From: Bigelowiella natans CCMP2755
Lineage: Eukaryota > Protista > Cercozoa
NCBI GenBank assembly: GCA_000320545.1
Contig: ADNK01001273.1
Location: forward strand, 22,504 to 86,503
Reading direction: 5' to 3'
Length of the DNA stretch: 64,000 nucleotides
Shown here: positions 6,507-29,552 of the stretch, one piece after another
How positions within the stretch are numbered: position 1 is the stretch's first letter
How the letters are laid out: each line of letters opens with the position of its first letter
Position numbers and translations under genes: made by a program
The notes under the pieces: model-generated
What the model was told of the DNA's origin: nothing
Database searches by the model: none
Seen by the model: the letters and a program-made list of their open reading frames with translations, nothing else

Positions 6507-6866
6507 CAGGATGATGATGATGATGAAGGTAATGCTACTACACCTAACAACAAACAGTTATTAAGAATGGAAGAGAGAGAGAGAGAGAGATATGGAAAAA
6601 GCATTCACGGGGATTTAGATTTCTTTCCCTCTCGTTATTGAATTCTGTATCTAATGGTCTAACAGCCTTCCATGCCAAAATCATCGTCATACGTCACATC
6701 GTCGTGACGTTCATCATTGAGATCATCATCATCCATGTTGAAACGACCCATCACTTAAAACGATATCGCACAGAATTCTTCACGAGATTGCCCGTGTGCA
6801 AAACTACGAATACACCGATCTAAATGTAGGACTGTGCAGCAGCAACCACACACACACACACACACA

Positions 6867-6905
<39 letters not shown>

Positions 6906-6993
6906 GGAAGCGAGCTAGGGATCATTCGCAACTGAAAGAATTTGCTGTTACTAGTTTGAGTTAGTCATTGTAAACGATAGTCAATGAAAGTGC

Positions 6994-7026
<33 letters not shown>

Positions 7027-7126
7027 GTAATGGTGTTTGATGATGATGAATGATTATGCCAAGGAAACACGCTTTGGGCCTGTGTTGCTCCTCTTCGTCC
7101 TGCTGGGGGTACACATACATCTCCAC

Positions 7127-7157
<31 letters not shown>

Positions 7158-10458: not shown

Positions 10459-12033
10459 GAACAACGACGACGACGACGCCCAAGGAATGCTAGATAGAAC
10501 GTATGCACAACAACATAGCAGTGTGCATATATTGACTACTCTCCAAATGTCTCTCTATCTTTCTTTCTTTTCTATTGACCAAAGGATTGCCGCACCTCCC
10601 TGAAATCAACTCAAGGGCGAAGATCGCTGCCGAGCTGATGCAGGTGTTCCGTAGAGGAGGAGGGGGGGGGGGGGGGGTGGAGGAGAATCTATCAGCACGA
10701 TGAAAACTGAAGTATAAGATTAAGACAATGATTCTCGAAAATGACATTGGAGATTATGATGATGATTAGGGTGATGATGATGATGATGATGAAACACGAC
10801 AGCTATTGCACGCCAAAAGAGTTGATTGTCCCCCCGTCCCGTCCTCCTCCTCCTCCATCCACCTCCAGTTCATCATAATAATGCTGCTGTGATTGTGGTC
10901 ATTATCATCATCATCATCGTCATCATCATCATCTTCTTCTCTCCTGCTCTGTTTTGTTTTTTTCCCCGCCCAAAAACAACTTCTATTTGTCTTGTGCCGC
11001 TCCTCCTCCTCCTCCTCCACCACCATATGGAGATAATTCGATCGCTCTGCACATGCGAATATGAAATAATGCGGACGTCTGCTAATAACAGCAACAGCAT
11101 CCCACTCCGTGCACGACTTCTGCAGCTAGTAGTTGTGGTGGCGTTGTATCTATTTGTCCGACAAGAGATATTTTCAAAGCAATAGCGCGAGCTATCCTAA
11201 CATATCAAGAAGAAGCACCGATATGATGACGTCATGATGGCCTGGTCGCCGGTGCTTCAGCCCCGCACAAAATCTTTCCAAGCGAAGCTTCGTTATTCCT
11301 GAATAATAAGACCCTGTTGTTGCCGCAGACACACCCAAAGCTGGTTGGAACGATCCCTCGGCACATCATGTAAATAGGGAAGGGGGGGGGTGGGGGGGTG
11401 GGATGGGTAGGTTGTAGTATGAGGTGATGCTGATGCTAGTGCTGCTGATATTACCAATTTGAATGGCAATGCTACTTATTGCAATGCTAATGAGACGTGT
11501 GCCTTTCTGGTATTTAACACCGCCCAATGCTGCCTCCCTCTTCTTCTTCGATCTGATTGATCATGATAACCATAAATCTGCTGCATCTTCCTTCTTCTAC
11601 GGAGTGAAAACGTATGCTGCAATGCATTTATCCTCCTCCTCCTCCTCCTCCTCACCATCATCACCAACACCATCGTCATCATCACTATCACTATCACTAT
11701 CACCATCATCACCACGCTTACGTCATCGTCGCAGGTACCGCTGCTTACTTCGCCATATCAACAACTACATCTCTCTCCATGGATACGCTGCACTTCCCGA
11801 TGACGCGCAGAAGAGACACACGCAATATCAGGAAGAAGGTCGTCTCGATGTCTGCCACTAGAGAGAGAAGAAGAAGAATAGGAAAAAGTAATTATATGTT
11901 GGCTAGCCGTTTCGAGGATGCGGGTTACAGCATATAGGTGTGCGGGGATGGTAGTAGCAACATCCAAATCAGCAATATCTGTCGTCGTCATTGTCTTCAT
12001 CCTCCTCCTTCATCTTCCTCCTCCTCCTCCTCT

Positions 12034-12080
<47 letters not shown>

Positions 12081-12889
12081 TTCTTCTTCTTCTGCTCTCA
12101 ATTGAAGTGCAATCACCAACGGTCATTGCTGCTGTGTGCCTTTCCTCGTTGGTTGGGGACATATTTGAGAATCTCTCTCTCTCTCTGTCTCTCTCTCTCT
12201 CTCTCTCACATTGAAGTTATTATTGTTGTTATTATTGTTATTACCATTATTGGCGATGTAAAGGTTCTCCAGACGCTGGAGACACAACGAAGGTAGCAGC
12301 AGCAGTAGTAGCAGCAGCAGCAGTAGCCCGCGACCACAATCAGCACACATAAAGAACGCACACAATTGCTTAGATAACGATGACAACGGCATCTCTTCTC
12401 TTCGTTCACTTTGTCTTCTTCTTCTTCTTCTTCTTCTTCTTCTTCTTCTTCTCAGGCGCATATGCTGGCATGGTGGGACGAAGTCTACGCAAACTCCAAT
12501 TACGTACGGATGATGATGATGATTATGATGATGATGATTCTTCAGTGACAACGATGATGATGATGATGATGATGACAGTCGGTGCTTTCGCCTCTCTCTT
12601 CGAAACCGCCATCCTTGTCGTCCTCCTTTTCACTTCTTGCGCGTTTTCTCGTCTCTGATAATGTCGCCGTCCAAATGTATCATTCTTCATTAATCTTACA
12701 CACACACGCACACACACACACACACACACACAAACGCAAATACACACATATGCTTTGTTCTCCCCGCCTCAGCAAAGAGATACTACTGCTAAAGATAAAG
12801 AATATGAAGATCTAGAAAGGGGTGCGAGCTTGCGCATGCGCGTGCGCCCGTGTATGTGTGTGTGTGTGTGTGTGTAAAGATGGTGGGAG

Positions 12890-17005: not shown

Positions 17006-17997
17006 CTACTTACAAAGTTTTGCGGCAACCTTGGTAACGTAAGATCCCTGGAAATTATGACGGAATGCACCACTCTCAATGACCGATGATATGATTGTAT
17101 TTGTGATCAATACCTGAAATTCGGCAATCTCAAGTTCGAGCTTAGAAGGTTCACGACTCCCATCTGCCCCGGCAAAGCAACCAGCGCCGTAGGGAGAGCC
17201 TCCATGAACCTCAGACATGTCGAATAGCTTCTTGCAAGCATATCCAATAGGAACGTAGATCATACCCTGGTATTAGGTGATGTTGAGTCTTATGCAACAT
17301 ATTATCTGCGGCCAAGAGAACTTTAAATTTCCTAATATTACGTGGTGGACGAGCTGCGTCACGAAGGTTAGATTTGTGGTTTCTTGGCCACCGCCTTGTG
17401 TTGCAGTGGAAACGAACATACTCGCAGGCTTGCCAACAAGAGCTCCCTTCATCCATAACCCGCCAGTGTGGTCGATCAGGGCCTTCATTTGGGTGGCAGC
17501 CATGCCGAAACGGGTGGGGATTCCGAAGATAATTGCGTCCGCGTCAGCGAGGTCTTGAGGTGTTGCAGCTTTGTGTTCAGCGTTCTTTTTCGGTGCTTTC
17601 ATCTTCTCGAGCACCTAAGCGAAGGTCGGATTAAAACAAAGGGATCTTTAGTTTTTTGTCCAAAGTATGGTTTAGGCTTAATTTTTGCCTCCTCAGAGAG
17701 CGTCTCTGGGGCGCGCATGATTGTCACCTGAACACATAGATCGAATGTCAAGCAATACGTAGTCACTCTTTCATTCGCAGATAATATTACCTTCCCCCCT
17801 GCAGCCTCAACACCCTTACCAACAGCGATTGCCATTTTCTCAATGTGCTTGTACATGCTGTAGTATACAATCTGAACAAAAGATAGAATGCGTTGGAGAG
17901 GAAGGGGGAGGAGGAACGTACACGTTCGAAAAAGGTGGCTAGGTTCTATGTCATTGATTACCAAAACTTTCGGGGATGTCTTGCTTTCTTCTGCCAT
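17006..17997 (-). CDS. WrbA-family flavodoxin-like NAD(P)H:quinone oxidoreductase
   Basis: [12 protein letters not shown]|[14 protein letters not shown]..., [52 protein letters not shown], stop at 17006. Introns are short (about 60-90 nt) and lack microsatellites. Confidence 0.95.
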
Positions 17998-18665
17998 GGT
18001 GAAACTTATTCTTCGACACGATACATGAAACAAAATCAACATGAAATGTCAGTAAGGCTACGATGCTGTCAAGATGTGAGTAGTTTTTGTGTAAAAAGAA
18101 AGCCTTTATGGTCGCTGGAACAAGTCAAAAAGGTTGCTCACAATTTTGCTTTCGATTTCTGGACACAAGCGAGAGGCCACTTCGAGTTATGCAAGCACAC
18201 GGAGGCAGGGTTGTAATAGAGCCTGACAAAGAGACCGTCTTTCGGTTCCGAAACACCAAAATGCATACCATTTCTAAGTAAAAATGCCCAGATTTCCCGG
18301 GTTCGAGTTCCAACAGACCGTGGATACTCTAAATTTGACAAGATAGGAATACAGATTCCACTTCCTTAGTCCTTCCTAAGCAAGCCGGTACATCCCGAGA
18401 GACTCCCCTGAGATATTGACACCAAGTTCTTAGTAATATCAGATATTTATGATCAATTAGCATGTCGTTGATCCAAGAACTATGCCATTTATCCTTTTTG
18501 TTTGCTTTGGATAAGTATGAGGAGGAACTTCGACAATCGCCTCTACGATCTTGACTTCGAAGCTTCGAACCAGTGAGGGAATGAGGAGCGGAATGCCGTA
18601 CTCTTTCGATTCGGCGTAACAAATAGTTGCATATAATTTCTAAAGGTCCTTATTTCTTACCCAGA
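17998..18665. promoter_or_regulatory. Divergent intergenic region, likely bidirectional promoter (flavodoxin / F-box-FIST)
   Basis: Head-to-head start codons about 670 bp apart. Positional inference only. Confidence 0.4.
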
Positions 18666-19907
18666 ATGGCCAAGAAAAGAACTGCTGTGGCCGTTGAAAT
18701 GGACAATCAAATGGGTTCGAACAATGGAAACGATAACAAAAAAGAGCTTGGGGAACTGCTACCATCTCCCCCCAAAAGAAGTAGAAATTTACCTCAAGGC
18801 CTTGATACCACTTCCTCACTCACTGTGAGGTTGGATTTGCAGCTTATAAATAAAGTTCTGAACTTCTTGGATAATAGATCCGCATCAAGAGTAAAAGCTA
18901 CTTGTCAGGTCTTTAATACGCTTGGCAAAAGAAGGCAGCAGTTTCCTCACTTCTCCGGGATCATTACTACGGGCCGACTTGATGAAGCTGTGAGAACTGC
19001 GAAAGGGTTAAACAACTCTAAGAAGTATAATCTAGAGCAAAAAGAGCCCCCAAACATCGTATGTGCGTTTCTCCAGAGAAATACCTCGGTAACACCGTCC
19101 AAAATTGCAGAAAGGTTTCCCAATGCGTCGATTTTCGGGTGCTACAATGTTGGTGTCCTCGGAGTGAACGAAGCAGGGTCTGGTACAATCGAAATTGAAG
19201 AAGAAGAAGAAGAAGAAGAAGAAGGAGACTGTCTTTCCGGGGCAGCAGCATTGACCTGGGGTTTCATCCCCGACTCGACCATAAAGACGATTTTCTTGTC
19301 GGAAGAGGACCTTCAAGCTGATCTCAAGCATGTTAGTAACCTACTCGTAAAGGCTAGCAAAACAGTCACCACTTGGAAAGGCTTTGTTCTTTGTGTACCC
19401 CCACAGTTTTCGGCAGAGGGTATCGAATGTTTTTTGGGAACATTGCGACAGGTACAACCTCTTGCAAAAGTGTGTGGGGGTATCTCTACCAGGGAAGAAA
19501 TTTTTGGGGGTCATGGAGACACTATCACAATAACTAAAGAGCGCTGTGCACTTATGTGCATTGCTGGCCGTGTTGATTTCGACTGCATCACATGTCGTAG
19601 TAAGGACGTCAAGTCAGCACTGGTACGCACAAAAAAGTCCCTGCATGATGCAGGTAAAGAGGTAATTGGAAGCCTCCTTTTCACTTGCTGCGGTCGGGGA
19701 GAAGAATTTCACCTCGAAAGGCACTTTGAGTCACAGCAGTATTGGGATCAGGTTGGCCCTGCTCCTATCAATGGCATATTTGCCGGCGGAGAAATTGGAC
19801 CAAGCAGTCGTCGTAGCAATAGAGCTCATGTTCAAGGATACACTGCAGTGTATGCGGTGTTCTCCATTGAAAAGGACCTTATGAGTGGCAGATCATCAAC
19901 AAAATGA
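18666..19907 (+). CDS. F-box plus FIST-domain protein (FBXO22-like), intronless
   Basis: F-box-like LDLQLINKVLNFLDNRSASRVKATCQVFN; FIST_C motifs LLFTCCGRG, GIFAGGEIGP, QGYTAVYAVF. Confidence 0.88.
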   Translation: MAKKRTAVAVEMDNQMGSNNGNDNKKELGELLPSPPKRSRNLPQGLDTTSSLTVRLDLQLINKVLNFLDNRSASRVKATCQVFNTLGKRRQQFPHFSGIITTGRLDEAVRTAKGLNNSKKYNLEQKEPPNIVCAFLQRNTSVTPSKIAERFPNASIFGCYNVGVLGVNEAGSGTIEIEEEEEEEEEGDCLSGAAALTWGFIPDSTIKTIFLSEEDLQADLKHVSNLLVKASKTVTTWKGFVLCVPPQFSAEGIECFLGTLRQVQPLAKVCGGISTREEIFGGHGDTITITKERCALMCIAGRVDFDCITCRSKDVKSALVRTKKSLHDAGKEVIGSLLFTCCGRGEEFHLERHFESQQYWDQVGPAPINGIFAGGEIGPSSRRSNRAHVQGYTAVYAVFSIEKDLMSGRSSTK

Positions 19908-20900: not shown

Positions 20901-21672
20901 GCTAGATTGAGCGATGTGAATGAACGAAGCACGTGTTTTTAATGATTGGTGGCACCGCCCTCTTCACAGACCCCGAAATCAACGCCCGAGGAGAGTTTTT
21001 AGCGTCCAAGAACCCCTGGTGCAATGAACCAACCCCGACAACCCTGTCCCTGACCCCAAGCAGGAATCTGCTCTTGGAGGAGGCAAAAATGCATGGGGAT
21101 CCTTGAAAGCTGCAGACTGAACATGTTGTCGCAAGCATATATATTGGTCATCACCCTTCCAGTCTTGTCGCAGGACCAAAAGATCCTGCAGTCATGGCAA
21201 CGAAAAAAAGAAGATAAAAAAGGAGAATTTGTTGGTACGGAAAGATTAGGACAGACGTGGTCGAGGGCGAGTCCCAAGTCGCATGGGTGCGATTGGAGGA
21301 GGTTTTTCTTCGAATTCACAGCACTTTCTGCCAAACCGATAAGGATAGCCGCCTACTCACAACGCTTGCTGACAAGTAAACCCTGTTCGGTGGTGACCGT
21401 GCCACTTCGGCATACCGGAGAGTAGGGGGGAGAGAGAAAGAGGGGAGAGCAGGCGGGGATTAGATACCAAGAGAAGGAAGGGGGGGGGGAAGAGGGGAAT
21501 GGGGGGGAGAGAGTGGTGTGAGAAGGATGAGATCTCCATCAAGAAGAAGGGGTATGATGAGTATCAGATCCGGGAATATGAATCACTTACTTTCCTCCTC
21601 CTCCTCCTCCTCCTCCTCCTCCTCCTCCTCCTCCTTCTCCTTCTTCTTATAGGCAACAGAAGGGAGGAAGAT

Positions 21673-24215
21673 ATGCCTCAGATTACTGTGGAAAATTCGG
21701 TGGGCATTCGTACGCCACTCCTCGCGAAGAAAGATGGCGGAACCTGTAGTGTCGTCCGGCGGAGAGGCCCGATTCCGCAAGGGACTTTGGTGTCCACATC
21801 GGTGGCAATTTCTCTCATCCTCTGCATCACTGTTTCAATCTACACTGGTGCGCCGGGGGATATTCCTGAGATTCCAGATCCTGTCCCCCTTCCAGTGAAG
21901 GGCAGCAGCAACGGCGGCCTCTTTCACGGAACGTTCCCCACTCAACAAGAAGCTCTGCAACCAGAGCCCTCACCATTCGTTATCTACGACAGGGATGGCT
22001 CTAGAATCACCCTATTCGGATACAAGTTTGATGGCGCATATGCTATGAAGAAGACTATTTGTCCTACCATTGGAACGGTGCTAGCCACCCTGCTTGCCTT
22101 CGCCCCCTTAGCAGCTATTCGTAAGGCCAAAGAAATCAAGGTGACGAGTAACAACTAGGAGTGGCAAGACTTCGAAACGTTGAGGGAACAAAGACAATAA
22201 AGAGACTAGTGCCTGGCGCTGCCTTTTTTGATACACAGCGCTATTTTACCTTCATTCTTGAGATACTGTAAGTTTACTTCTACTTCACAATTATAATCAA
22301 TATTTGCAATAACAGGCCTTGACAACAAATCCTGCTCCTTACCCTGCGATGTTCGCGAACGCTACCAACTGGGTTGCGTACTCTTTCATCATCAAGGATG
22401 CTTTCGTCTTCATCGGAAATCTCCCGGGAGTGGTATGTTATATGTTCTTGAAGTGTATAACAGTCGCCACTTGATGACGAAATGGCTGATTTTCTCCTCC
22501 TCATTCCATTCCATAGCGTGATTTCTCACGAATATTCAACTCTTGTCACCATTGCCACCATTGTCATCATCATCATCATCACTATCACTATCACAATCAT
22601 CACCACAGGTAATGGGATTATACTACACAATATCGGCGTTCGATGTATCACAAAACAAGGACCACAGGAGAGTGGTAGGGCAGCACGCAACCCACCCTAA
22701 CCAACACTCTAATAGTTCCGAAAGGAAGTAGAGAAGATGGGGATTTTATTATTGATAGAAAAAGAAATTCATGTTACAGAAGATGGGTCTGTCTTCCTCA
22801 TCGAAAGGAAATTTATGTTTGTCACCCATTACCCGTAGGTGCGGCATCTGGTATATGGGTATGCTCTTGCCTTCCCACTGCTAGCAGCTCTACTTGCAAT
22901 CTTCATGAAGAATGAGCAGGTATTGTTCTTCACTCTACTACTGCTGATACTGCGACGAAGAACAAAGTGAACAACCCCTCCATCCTGTCCTGACTTGACT
23001 GACTGATCTCCACATTGCTGCCATAATCGGCATTCTCCTCTTGTTTAGATGACGCAATACGTGATCGCGAACTTCAGCATGGCGTTCCTCATCGCGTTCT
23101 ATGGTTCACCCCTCCTCGAAGCTCAGAACGTCATCGCGAAGAAAAATTCTTCGTGCTTAGATGCTCGGTAGGGAAGATCCGTAGCAGTTTAGCCTCAGGC
23201 AACCAGAAACTCGTGGTGGTGTGAGGTGGTGTTTCGTCGACGATGGGGGCATGATAGTGAGAGATTATGGAGAGTATCACCATGCTTCTTTGTCTGCCAA
23301 CATCATCATCATCATGAGTGACCGTCGTATTCTTTGTTTCAAAACGCATCCAGGCTCGCATGGTGCAGTCTTGCAAACGCTGCGATGTGGCTGATTTACG
23401 GATTTGCCCTCGGCGACTTCTGCATATGGTTTCCGAACCTTCTGGGAGCGATCCTGGTCGTTTTTATCATCACAAGTTTCATTATTTAGATAGTATTCTG
23501 CTGTCACGGCTCTCCAACCTCCAAAGCGGCAAACCCAGTCTTACACAATGCGCGTGGTATTTGCGAATACTTAACTGCATTCCCCCCCTTTCTGTTGTTC
23601 CTCCTCCTCCTCCTCCTCCTCGTCCCCCCCCCCCTTAGGCTTCTATCCAACTTGGCCTAAAATGGATGTACCCCAGTACGCAACTGGACGACATGAACGT
23701 CGCTGAGACCCTGGTACGCTCTCGGTGCATGTATGTATGGGTAGTAGCAGAAGATTTTGAGGTACTGAGGCAGCTGCAGCCAGCTGTGTGTGATATGTGA
23801 TATTTACATATCGTCTCCACCGTGTAAACTGCAGAGAGGGATGGATGGAGGACTCATTAGTTGCGTTGATGTACGACTGTGTGTGCTCGTCCCCCCTCCT
23901 CCCCCTCCCCCCCCGTTCCCCGTTCCCCGTTCCCCGTGTCCCCCCACCATCCAGATCTACAAGCCTGGAAGTCCCGAGAACTGTAAGTCGACTAAAGTTC
24001 CAAGTGCGCTAACAGCATCCGGTCCAATCGTGCAGGAATACGTATCCGGGGTCCTTCTCCCTGTGCTCAAAGCGCTTGAATTACCGGAGGAGAACGAATT
24101 GATCTCATACATCCAAGGTGGGGGGGAGTGGGAGGAATGATGGTGCAGGAATTAAACCCAGTAACAGTCATAACGATAACGATGAGCCTGAGACTGTGGC
24201 TCAGGCAAAAGCAAG

Positions 24216-24253
<38 letters not shown>

Positions 24254-25504
24254 ATCCTCCTGCCCTACCCCTACTATTATTGCTACCATAGCTGGTTGTT
24301 GCTGTTGTTTGGTTGCTTGCACGTTTGATCTCTCGTCGTCGTGATAGGCTCACTAAAGAATAAGCAGAAGCTTGCTAGCGTGCAGGAGGTGTTAGAGAAT
24401 AACGGCAGAAAGGAGAGGCACTTCGATGCCAAGGCCAGATTTGTAAGTGAAACCCTCTCCCTCCCTCCCCTCCCCTCATTCCTCCCTCTCCCCCCGCCTC
24501 CCTCCTGCCTCCCGAATCTTCGCATGCGACACGCTGATATTGGCGATTTATCGCCCTGCCACAGGTGACCGACCGCAAGTTTCAGTGGAGTCATGGCGGG
24601 TCTTTCTTAGTGGAGGAGCAGGTCGGGCGGGAAAAGAGCCGCACAGGGTTCCGCCAGATCATATCGAAGGAACTTCAAGTCAATCCAAGGGTAACATTAT
24701 CACCCGTTCGGCACCACCCCTCGTCGTTGTGACGTTCGCCATCATCAACATTTTTATCGCTCATGCCGCCGTCATCTGTTCTCCCCGTTTATCTCATTAT
24801 CCATATTGAGAATGACATGACAATCGGTATTGTCGGTTCCGGCGTGATTTGTTGATGTGATGATGATGATAACGCTGCCATTAGGCAATCGTCTCCGGGA
24901 AGAAGGTAGCATTCTGTGTGACGGACAAGTACGGTGTCATCCAGTCTTGCAGCGAGAAGTTCCTGCAGATGACAGGCTACAGGTATATGCGGGAGCGAAA
25001 CTAATTAAATTCAAAACTTCATCCTCCTCCCCCTCCTGTTCAGTGGAGTAAGTTGCATTTCTCCCCGTTTTCCAACGCTGATGACTCTCCCCGATCTTGC
25101 AAAAACCAATGACTTCGAATGTTACTGTAATAGCGACGATATGAATGGTCGTTGCTGACAATAATTGTGTTTCTGGCTCCTGTCTCTCCTGCTGTCATCT
25201 CGCAGCCTCTACGAAGTGTGCGGAGTGAACTGCAACTTTCTTCAAAGGTGGTGGTGATGGTGGTGGCGGCGGTGGACGTTCCCTGAGTTGCTTTCAAATG
25301 AAGCAACGATAGAAATGATTATAACGGACTTCTAATTGCTGCTGAAGTTGGTGGTTGTCTGATTCTTGCGATATGTATGATGATGATGATGATGTTATTG
25401 ATGTTGTCATTCTTTTGTGTTGTCAGGGACGCCAAGGGTGTGAACAGAACCGACCCTCTAGCCATCCAGGTCAATGAACACACTTGTATTCAGCATATTT
25501 GTGC

Positions 25505-25545
<41 letters not shown>

Positions 25546-26278
25546 TGTGTATGTGTGTGTGTATGTGATATCCTTTGTTGAAAGTGATTTCCTTGGAAGA
25601 TGAGACGACGATGTTGTTTCTTTCCATTCTTCTCTCCATCATCAGCTTCAATCATCATCGTCATCATTTCCATGAATTTGACGGGCATCACCCTCATTAC
25701 GACAACTTTCAACTTTCCCCATCAGGCCCTCCGCGAAGCAATTGAAAACGGCGAGGAGCACCACACGGTACAGCAGCAGCAGCAGCTGTAGTAGTAGTAG
25801 TGGTAGTAGTAGTGGTAGTAGTAGGTAGATTCAACTGCTGAAAAAATAACAAGGTTGTCCTTATCATCATCCATCATCCATTGTCATCATTATCGTTATC
25901 ATGAAAACTATAACGACTGAAGCTAACGAACGATTAGAAGATTTCTTTATGAACAATGGCCTACTATGATGGTGGCGATGATGATAATGTTGATGATGAT
26001 GATCAGGTGTTGTATAACCACACCAAATGGGGAACGCCCTTCTGGAATCTCTTACATCTCTACCCTCTCAAGAATGCTGGAGTCGTTGACCGGTGAGTAA
26101 GTACTGCATAGCTAGCTGCAGGGCGTGAGTGTATGTCATGGATGATGATTGTAAGACATGTGATGGTTCATTTTTCAGGTACATCGGTGTGCAAGAGAAA
26201 ATCGACGACAAGGAGGCTCAGGAGTTAGGGGGTAAAATAGCCTGGAATTTCGAAGTTCCGCCAAGAGTGGCTGCTTAG
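21673..26278 (+). CDS. SWEET (MtN3/saliva) sugar transporter fused to a C-terminal LOV (PAS) photosensor domain, about 607 aa
   Basis: 16 GT-AG exons with consistent phases: 21673-22140, 22316-22432, 22609-22674, 22839-22919, 23049-23167, 23354-23456, 23639-23713, 23955-24117, 24348-24442, 24565-24690, 24885-24982, 25206-25247, 25427-25469, 25726-25767, 26007-26092, 26179-26278. Two MtN3 repeats (APL..NPAPY..NWVAY..GNLPG; YGSPL..MWLIYG..PNLLG) are followed by LOV (FLQMTGYSLYEVCGVNCNFLQ...LREAI...LYNHTKWGTPFWN...YIGVQ). An acceptor at 21652 implies a further upstream exon. Confidence 0.9.
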
Positions 26279-26819
26279 ATGAAACAACACTTATATACCG
26301 TTTGCGCGCTGGACTATTCTTCCTTCTTCACGCCAAACCCTAGTTGTTTTCTCCTGATTCATCATCAGGGAGATCGCTTGTGATCTCAGAATGACTCCTA
26401 CTACTACTACTACTACTACTACTACTATTACTATTACTACAATTATTCATAAATATTGTCATGATTATACAGCACACAGCACTGTTGTCTTACGACATAC
26501 ACATTTAGTGGCAATCTGCTACCTGCGGAAGAGTTCTTTTAATTCATTATTTATCTGTAAGCACTTAAACTGTTAAAACGAAAAAATTGCACGTGTTCTT
26601 CATCAAAAGGTGTAGACGCTGCATGGGCGCGATGATATCAGACATAATTGAACGAACACTACACGCGTACATCATTCGTTCACACGGCAGCATCGCTAGG
26701 TCGGATGATGGACGGGGTGAACTCGTAGCAAGATTTAACTGAGGAATTTGATTCATGAAAAGATCACAAAAGAGATGATCCCCAAATGTTCCGCCGTGAT
26801 ATGGCAACCATCTATAATT

Positions 26820-27480
26820 TTAAGAGTTGCATCAAGTTCTAATGCAAAGTGTTGTGTGCGAATGCCATGTCTGTTGGGAATCTTCAAACACGCGTGTTGC
26901 ATGGTTTCATGCTAGCATGGTGGCTCGCACGGCTAGACGGTCATTGCTAGATTGTTGTCCCTGCAAACTTGCAATTCGGTCCTGCTAGCTAGCTAGATTG
27001 CATTTCTCAGCCATGCTAGTAAGCCACACGTAATATTTCTTGATGATGATCACGACACTCACGACATGGCACCATGCCTATGCCTGCTCTAGTGCTAGCC
27101 ACGTACGCACTGTGCATGACGGATGTAAATGTTTTCCAGCAGACAAGTAATGCATGTACGTAGCGTCTGCTCGTTGAATTGTAACAGTCACAGAGTCGTG
27201 CGCATAGCCGCAGGTGTCCATAGATTGGTGTGCGTGTTAATGCTCTTACAGAAGGAACCACAACACACGTAATGTGTGATTGCTCTTGGGCAGATCAAAG
27301 TTTCATCGCTCATTTGATGATTCGAATCAACGTTTTGCTCTCCTACAACTAGTTGTGTGTGAGCCATGCTACTGAACATCTGCCTCTTCGCCGTATAATC
27401 ATGTTGAATTGGTGACAGGAGCGCTCCTACACCTTTTCTATGCACATTTTAGACATTTGCACACACAGCTGCTCGATCAA
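26820..27480. other. Partially TpA-depleted, CTAG-rich intergenic island
   Basis: In 26845-27015 nearly all TpA lie in CTAG, including ctagctagctag at ~26985. Confidence 0.6.
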
Positions 27481-28457: not shown

Positions 28458-29552
28458 ATGCCTACCGCACCTCAAATAGAAAAGAAGAACGATGACATTA
28501 TCGTTAGAACACATCAAAGCGGTATGATCGAGAAAATTATGGAAAATTCCATGGCAATCTTCTCCGTTGTCTTCCTCATTGGCATTGCTGCTTCGAAGAC
28601 TATTTTGACCAAGGCAGCCTTCAAGCAAGTGGATTTTGGCTATCCGATCATCCTTTCTGGAATGTCCTGCCTTGTCACTGACACTGCAATCGCGGGCCTT
28701 TGGGGAACTGGTATGGCCTCGTACGCTGCTCCTAAGTCTGACAAACTGTGGTCCTTTGCTGTGGTCACCGTTATGACAGCCCTGGGAATGGCATTCCAGA
28801 ATCTTGCATTGAACATGCTCTCCGTCGCGCTTCAACAAGCTCTTCGGGCAACCCTTCCTGTTTTCGTGATCGTTTTCGAGCGTGTGATTCTGGGAAAGTC
28901 CCATAACAAACTTATCTACGTCGCTCTAATCCCCCTCACGCTTGGCCCTATGCTGTGCCTCAAGGGGTCCAGCGGTGCTGATATTACAGTCATGGGACTT
29001 ATTTACATGACTGCAGGAGTTCTAATGTCTGCTTTAAAGGTAGTGTACCTTGAGAAGGTCGTTCGCTCTGTCCGAAAGGATATGGGTATGGTATCCTTCC
29101 TCTTCTGGCTTGACCTCTTCATGGTGCCCATTCTCGCTCCGTGGACAGTTGCAAACGGTGAAATTTTCGAGGTAGCCAGCTGGCCACAAAGGACATCTGC
29201 AATTGCATGGGGATTCCTTATCCTCGTTTCTATAATGGGAGGCCTCCGTGCATATTCCATAAATATGGTGGTCAAGCACGCTAGCGCTCTGACCAAAACC
29301 GCCGCTGACATCTTCACTCAGGCGCTCACCATCTACGTGTCCCTTTTGATCTTCAACACTGAAGCTTCCACTATGCTTCATTTGGGTATTGCAGTCACCG
29401 TTGCTGGTTTCGGATTTTACACAGCTATTAAGTACAACGAGAAACAGAAGAAGAAGGCGAAGAAGGCGGCGATCAAGAAGGTCGTCGAAGATAACGATAA
29501 TGAGGTGGAGCCCTTCCTCAAGCCTTCTGATGCTGTTTCTCACCGTGTATAG
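28458..29552 (+). CDS. Triose-phosphate / nucleotide-sugar transporter family (DMT/SLC35), intronless
   Basis: 364-aa ORF with about 10 hydrophobic helices. Motifs FGYPIILS, FQNLALNMLSVALQQALRATLPVF, SALKVVY, VVKHASALT. Confidence 0.88.
   Translation: MPTAPQIEKKNDDIIVRTHQSGMIEKIMENSMAIFSVVFLIGIAASKTILTKAAFKQVDFGYPIILSGMSCLVTDTAIAGLWGTGMASYAAPKSDKLWSFAVVTVMTALGMAFQNLALNMLSVALQQALRATLPVFVIVFERVILGKSHNKLIYVALIPLTLGPMLCLKGSSGADITVMGLIYMTAGVLMSALKVVYLEKVVRSVRKDMGMVSFLFWLDLFMVPILAPWTVANGEIFEVASWPQRTSAIAWGFLILVSIMGGLRAYSINMVVKHASALTKTAADIFTQALTIYVSLLIFNTEASTMLHLGIAVTVAGFGFYTAIKYNEKQKKKAKKAAIKKVVEDNDNEVEPFLKPSDAVSHRV

Follow-up and report, generated by a model that had tools for sequence, protein, structure and literature searches.

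An expressed SWEET–LOV fusion conserved among chlorarachniophyte algae, a candidate light-responsive sugar carrier

Main

In this work, we analyse a stretch of 64,000 nucleotides from the chlorarachniophyte alga Bigelowiella natans CCMP2755 (contig ADNK01001273.1, positions 22,504 to 86,503, forward strand; hereafter the window, whose own coordinates are used throughout) and describe in it a 16-exon gene that encodes, from the N to the C terminus, an extra hydrophobic helix, a SWEET sugar transporter, a linker and a LOV-type sensor domain. Both domains are well known and their combination, which is expressed and conserved within the lineage, is apparently undescribed. We found no SWEET–LOV protein in the full-text literature searched, beyond whose reach lie the LOV catalogue of Glantz et al. 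2016 and some supplements; within those bounds, the view of a first-pass annotation, made from the DNA letters alone, which knew of no described fusion of this kind, holds. Automatic annotation already reveals the architecture. The SWEET fusions known from a survey of the family are SWEET–SWEET multiplications, PAS domains being unmentioned in its main text (PMC5742349), and cryptochromes are the only blue-light receptors named in the diurnal transcriptome of B. natans (PMC5635652).

One messenger RNA and one reading frame

The gene, with all its features on the plus strand, runs from an ATG at 21673 to a TAG ending at 26278, and its script-checked exon boundaries leave a single open frame of 607 amino acids. 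All 15 introns are of the GT–AG type and measure 86–256 nucleotides. Transcript evidence comes from Logan contigs of three studies, whose RNA status was guessed but agrees with the lack of introns in the contigs; one run is recorded as RNA and has sense reads beside the same poly(A) site as the contigs. These contigs support 12 of the 15 exon joints, including the four in the linker (23713/23955, 24117/24348, 24442/24565 and 24690/24885), which are deep in all three runs, and the other three (introns 2, 6 and 14) each adjoin masked simple repeats. One unbranched contig of 2,002 nucleotides (run X11, 21656–26387) crosses all 16 exons, SWEET and LOV together. Exons 5, 6, 8, 10 and 16 start in it at positions 766, 885, 1063, 1321 and 1758, and because these offsets fit the 607-amino-acid model exactly if exon 6 ends at 23456, introns 2, 6 and 14 are supported as well; an exon 6 donor at 23460, which would give 608 amino acids, is off by 3 nucleotides and was rejected. 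The fusion is confirmed as real, with one messenger RNA and one reading frame: the 16 exons, the frame of about 607 codons without a stop between SWEET and LOV, the four linker joints and the single transcript proposed in the first-pass annotation are all borne out.

According to the contigs, the transcribed unit spans 21656–26849, its 5′ end lying in or just before a CCT repeat. Beyond a CTA repeat, another contig (26449–26848), about as deep as the first, is read as part of the 3′ untranslated region of the same gene (26279–26849), with loose contig ends in runs X1 and X21 marking the poly(A) site at 26848–26849. That the gene is silent in run X21 was considered and rejected, as plus-strand reads there are confined to 26548–26850, beside the poly(A) site, as from a 3′-end library. 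Intron-retaining contigs are minor (depth 5–29 compared to several hundred). Upstream, an in-frame ATG at 21499 followed by a CTC repeat (21499–21672) would add 58 residues with a poly-Leu run; this extension is repeat-derived, the poly-Leu run is not seen in relatives, and in alignment four relatives start at the position of the ATG at 21673. At the search sensitivity used, the gene is single-copy in the assembly (91.4 megabases, 3,736 contigs).

The LOV exons have, in two of the three runs, roughly 1.4–1.8 times the contig depth of the SWEET exons, as would be expected if a LOV-only transcript or a cleaved LOV domain were the working form and the fusion were incidental or an artefact of the model. 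We regard this as very improbable, because contig depth is a poor measure, 3′ bias accounts for the excess, and the unbranched X11 contig, the deep linker joints in three runs and a frame kept in four genera all point to a working fusion.

The fusion occurs in four chlorarachniophyte genera

The window gene was searched exon by exon, exons 12–14 (14 amino acids each) not being queried, and full-length searches were run with ortholog proteins. Among 1.84 billion representatives, exon 1 retrieves three proteins, from Chlorarachnion reptans (594 amino acids, SWEET and LOV), Gymnochlora sp. (522 amino acids, SWEET and LOV) and Amorphochlora amoebiformis (361 amino acids, SWEET only), and a second search added a SWEET–LOV protein of 599 amino acids from Norrisiella sphaerica, labelled in UniRef only as ‘PAS domain-containing protein’. 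Each of the three orthologous fusions lies on its own transcript contig. The orthologs carry two MtN3_slv matches and one PAS_9 match above the Pfam cut-offs, so that both the profile composition proposed in the first-pass annotation and its occurrence in protists other than B. natans (Chlorarachnion, Norrisiella and Gymnochlora) were recovered. No fusion was found outside the chlorarachniophytes by searches that were limited in words and length and that do not thereby cover Lotharella, Partenskyella or other groups.

The first six intron positions of the Amorphochlora gene are identical to those of the window gene, its stop, which is expressed, closes a short tail, and the 5.7 kilobases 3′ of it hold no LOV remnant. 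Its LOV domain may have been lost or never gained, both of which would be compatible with a family tree whose root is unsettled.

Identity to the window protein across the LOV domain is 63–64% in Chlorarachnion and Norrisiella and 51% in Gymnochlora, whereas in the linker it does not exceed about 44%. The non-synonymous difference (pN) is 0.22 for the helical cap and LOV domain in the two closer genera, 0.10–0.16 for the SWEET domain and 0.42 for the linker, with saturated synonymous differences (pS). Because both pN and identity set it apart from the linker, the LOV domain is taken to be kept by purifying selection, which on these coding-sequence comparisons acts on both the SWEET and the LOV domain. 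The SWEET–LOV architecture gains weight from being conserved in four genera.

A SWEET transporter with an additional N-terminal helix

The SWEET domain (22048–23674, residues 126–330) extends from the end of exon 1 to exon 7 and comprises two MtN3_slv repeats and a linker helix, seven transmembrane helices (TM1–TM7) in all. Exon 1 (21673–22140, residues 1–156) holds the start codon, the N-terminal elements described below, a luminal spacer and TM1; exon 2 (22316–22432) holds TM2 and the start of TM3, exon 4 (22839–22919) TM4, exon 5 (23049–23167) TM5, exon 6 (23354–23456, donor at 23457, at an intron position shared with Amorphochlora) TM6 and the start of TM7, and exon 7 (23639–23713) the end of TM7 and the start of a juxtamembrane motif. 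Exon-wise Pfam searches find MtN3_slv in exons 2 (E value 7.5 × 10−4), 5 and 6 (E value 2.5 × 10−6), and three orthologs show two stretches at 79–84 bits; RNA contigs further support exons 3 (22609–22674), 4, 5 and 7, the first two along with the aligned model and the last with the alignment. All PDB matches of the transporter part, and likewise of exon 6 alone, are SWEETs.

Asn191 and Asn312 (TM3 and TM7) and Trp175 and Trp296 (TM2 and TM6) are invariant in all five family members, and both Asn motifs (GNLPG and PNLLG) and both Trp residues lie where the first-pass annotation had located them. When mapped onto AtSWEET13, Tyr178, Tyr201, Asp305, Pro311 and Gln322 are also kept. The protein resembles the SWEET family (PF03083; AtSWEET13, 5XPD; OsSWEET2b, 5CTG) in its two triple-helix bundles with a linker helix, Trp–Asn pairs, outer-gate Tyr and Asp, three gate prolines, TM7 Gln and cytosolic C-tail, and differs from it in an extra N-terminal helix, an Asp for the fourth proline and a folded sensor on the tail. 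Its pocket is lined by Leu141, Asn171, Trp175, Asn191, Phe261, Asn292, Trp296 and Asn312, of which the selectivity positions Leu141, Asn171, Phe261 and Asn292 come near the Leu/Asn/Met/Asn set by which SWEETs select monosaccharides (PMC9520054). We infer a monosaccharide-type pocket, which would pass monosaccharides.

The seven helices expected of a complete SWEET were found, but so was an eighth hydrophobic segment, TM0 (21784–21840, residues 38–56), which the first-pass annotation overlooked together with a possible sorting motif ahead of it (T-P-L-L, 21712–21723). All five family members start with an invariant Pro-Leu-Leu, a basic stretch and TM0, whose flanks are basic upstream and mostly acidic downstream; the spacer after it is not conserved. 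TM0 may be a signal anchor or, alternatively, a cleaved signal peptide. Because there are eight helices and basic residues precede TM0, both termini and with them the LOV domain would be expected, from what is known of the family, on the cytosolic side. The Pro-Leu-Leu motif is a candidate dileucine-type sorting signal, which we take to resemble those of vacuolar and lysosomal carriers.

Elsewhere in the genome, an intronless SWEET-like frame of 650 amino acids with a long low-complexity tail (contig C2592, 787–2736) has a degenerate pocket in which the equivalents of the TM2 Trp and TM3 Asn are changed.

A LOV-type sensor whose motif departs from the canon

The sensor is built from six short exons. 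Exon 11 (24885–24982) encodes strands A and B, helices C and D and a short D-x-x-G hairpin; exon 12 (25206–25247) the motif with Asn512, Cys513 (25231–25233), Asn514 and Gln517; exon 13 (25427–25469) a five-residue insert after the motif, seen in all four fusions, and the start of helix F; exon 14 (25726–25767) helix F with a second phosphate-binding residue, Arg535; exon 15 (26007–26092) Asn550, Lys553, Trp559 and Asn560; and the coding part of exon 16 (26179–26278) Gln580, a short conserved C-terminal helix and the stop. Exon-wise PAS matches come from exons 11 (E value 0.011) and 15, and the best PDB matches of exon 15 by itself are all LOV domains (E value 1.8 × 10−4). Sequence similarity to the LOV domains of aureochromes and phototropins reaches an E value of about 1 × 10−17.

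The Chlorarachnion LOV model, whose core has predicted local distance difference test (pLDDT) scores mostly above 90, superposes on phototropin LOV1 with a Z score of 18.8 and a root mean square deviation of 1.6 over 109 residues. Its Z scores against phototropin, aureochrome and ZEITLUPE LOV domains (17–19) are matched by that against the PAS domain of EAG (17.4), so that the fold by itself is no proof of light sensing, whereas identity is about 40% to LOV domains and 21% to the EAG PAS domain. Cys513, Gln517, Arg535, Asn550, Asn560 and the signalling Gln580 are invariant in four genera, and a Glu507–Lys553 bridge is present in the window protein. The reactive Cys and the motifs GVNCNFLQ, LYNHTK, FWN and IGVQ lie exactly where the first-pass annotation put them. 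Measured against the canonical GXNCRFLQG (PMC8017926), Arg is replaced by Asn in all four fusions, and the final Gly is replaced and followed by the insert. On its residues and fold, the sensor counts as LOV-type, its motif being a variant, and we consider it probable that it is photoactive.

Aureochrome and phototropin LOV domains are the closest in both sequence and fold, and aureochromes share the order of an effector N-terminal to a single LOV domain with flanking helices. Their effector is a bZIP domain or a kinase, compared to a membrane carrier here, and they lack its Asn for Arg, its five-residue insert and its very short C-terminal helix, their A/B hairpin being four residues longer.

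The genome holds further LOV genes, one with the motif N-C-R-I-L-Q-G and an equally short hairpin, joined in one frame to a GTP cyclohydrolase II-like sequence (contig C1882, about 11080–12510), and one with a fully canonical G-K-N-C-R-F-L-Q-G (contig C644, about 6800–7150, minus strand). Another protein has a tandem array of at least six PAS repeats, nearly identical to one another, that lack the LOV Cys (contig C1173, about 24900–27000, minus strand).

A variable linker between conserved ends

The linker is encoded by exons 8 (23955–24117), 9 (24348–24442, supported by RNA contigs and the aligned model) and 10 (24565–24690). It is partly disordered and about 140 amino acids long in three genera but about 60 in Gymnochlora, which lacks a helical block of exon 8 and has two isoforms four linker residues apart, probably from alternative splicing. 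Right after TM7 lies an acidic-hydrophobic motif that is present in the four LOV-bearing proteins and not in the LOV-less one. Ahead of the LOV core, a basic F-R-Q-x-x-S-K helix (24646–24681, predicted with a pLDDT of about 50) is a candidate A′α-like cap; both it and the short helix behind the core are kept in all four fusions. The exon 8 and linker helices have no Pfam match up to an E value of 10 and no match in the Atlas, and a Dpy-30/RIIa-like dimerization motif considered for exon 8 was rejected, as neither profile nor fold matched.

Light may modulate the carrier through a tethered sensor

Known LOV effectors are kinases, transcription factors, F-box proteins, RGS proteins and cyclic-nucleotide enzymes; in the literature searched, no LOV domain attached to a solute carrier came to light. 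The reading we favour, held at slightly under even confidence, is that the protein is a hexose uniporter of the endomembranes, with flux or oligomer state modulated by its cytosolic LOV domain under blue light. By analogy to the family, Cys513 would form a flavin adduct in blue light, and since Asn replaces the Arg next to this Cys, the adduct is probably short-lived or the ligand riboflavin. A flip of Gln580 might then loosen the N-cap helix and the short C-terminal helix on either side, which might alter LOV dimerization or docking at the cytosolic face of the transporter and, as a consequence, its oligomer state or inner gate; SWEETs act as oligomers whose cytosolic C-tails are regulatory hubs (PMC8195505, PMC9520054). 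As linker length ranges from roughly 60 to 140 residues, a tethered docking or dimerizing sensor would be preferred over a rigid lever, a variability that the first-pass proposal of light control had left out of account and that argues against rigid mechanical gating.

In chlorarachniophytes, β-1,3-glucan is stored in the cytoplasm, within vesicles that form a cap over the pyrenoid (PMC10927497). More speculatively, the Pro-Leu-Leu motif could target the protein to a compartment that is acidic or serves for storage, for instance this vesicle, where glucose could be released from the glucan store in the dark and held back in the light; a carrier closed in light seems slightly more likely than one open in light. 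In the strongest form, a directly light-gated carrier would switch hexose flux within seconds without a kinase or second messenger, release glucose from the glucan store and be portable to other cells, which we consider possible but rather unlikely.

Several observations weigh against the modulated hexose uniporter. In the transporter, the gate prolines Pro145, Pro164 and Pro265 are present, but the fourth, before TM6, is Asp282, so that only three of the four prolines reported as kept in the first-pass annotation are there, and the TM5 gate Gly is Ala251. Gate residues are variable in SWEETs outside plants, and both changes also occur in the LOV-less Amorphochlora relative. Because they replace residues that AtSWEET1 needs, its inner-gate prolines and gate residues being required (PMC5742349), transport activity is not to be assumed. 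With Leu258, a further departure from plant SWEETs, and a first helix bundle unusually conserved across genera (roughly 73–85%), they would also fit a light-regulated carrier of something other than hexoses, such as a small polyol, a nucleoside-like compound or a flavin, and some SWEETs do carry non-sugars (PMC8195505). The retained Trp–Asn pairs and monosaccharide-type selectivity positions make such a substrate improbable.

In the sensor, the motif reads N-C-N-x-L-Q in all four fusions, with Asn514 in place of the phosphate-binding Arg, and the A/B hairpin is of a short, generic PAS type in all four; two other LOV genes of the genome retain the Arg, so that its replacement is specific to the SWEET–LOV family. 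The motif Arg binds the phosphate of flavin mononucleotide, and its change to Asn is larger than one to Lys. The first-pass annotation correctly noted that the photoactive Cys, the two flavin-binding Asn and the signalling Gln are kept; it did not weigh the change of Arg to Asn in all four proteins. The loss of this Arg family-wide, the short NifL-like hairpin, a second Cys (Cys482) that lines the pocket in three of the four fusions and the LOV–GTP cyclohydrolase II gene, which suggests that flavin sensing is in use, would suit a non-photochemical sensor of flavin, redox state or another small ligand, and hence metabolic regulation rather than regulation by light. We hold this to be unlikely, given that the reactive Cys and all ring-binding residues are invariant, that Lys in place of the Arg only shortens the lit state of YtvA and Chlamydomonas LOV1 while signalling continues (PMC4161478) and that riboflavin supports a photocycle in LOV proteins (PMC5314338).

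The full-length model is poor (pLDDT 49), its domains being without contact, and Amorphochlora expresses its transporter without a LOV domain, which is therefore dispensable for the family. Along with the long, variable and partly disordered linker and the proposal that SWEET tails are docking hubs (PMC8195505), the expressed LOV-less relative also suits an uncoupled protein, in which an active transporter anchors a photoactive sensor or serves as a transceptor for partners while flux is light-independent. The chain contains no further effector domain, and the motif after TM7 occurs only in LOV-bearing members, as expected of a docking site; we accord the uncoupled arrangement a low probability.

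Lineage-specific LOV fusions with variable motifs are known from marine protists, with kinase, bZIP, RGS, WRKY, homeobox, EF-hand and HSF effectors and no transporter (Coesel et al. 2021, PMC8017926). The KCNH channels (EAG and hERG) likewise have a cytosolic sensor that regulates a membrane transport protein, their PAS domain being insensitive to light (PMC8017926). Direct light gating, if true, would make the SWEET–LOV protein a new kind of natural carrier. Should light control the protein, it would couple light perception directly to carbon flux in an alga whose plastid is secondary and whose glucan store lies outside that plastid, and would offer a natural model of gating by the SWEET tail and a template for optogenetic control of glucose movement. 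The engineered, artificial LOV-gated channel BLINK, with its sensor on the cytosolic side, shows feasibility, and bestrhodopsins combine retinal-based sensing with the regulation of an anion channel. We know of no natural flavin-controlled solute carrier among KCNH channels, BLINK and bestrhodopsins. The family holds natural controls, with the short linker of Gymnochlora and the LOV-less Amorphochlora, the latter transformable (PMC10927497), and the shared Arg-to-Asn motif is a natural LOV variant of interest.

Neighbouring genes

A conserved gene neighbourhood was ruled out, as the Amorphochlora neighbours differ. Upstream of the SWEET–LOV gene lie a spliced flavodoxin-like gene of the FMN reductase/WrbA type (about 17270–18040, minus strand) and a gene for a FIST-domain protein (18627–19907, plus strand). 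Two kilobases downstream is an intronless gene of the triose-phosphate/nucleotide-sugar transporter family (28458–29552, plus strand), which does not stand beside the Amorphochlora SWEET gene.

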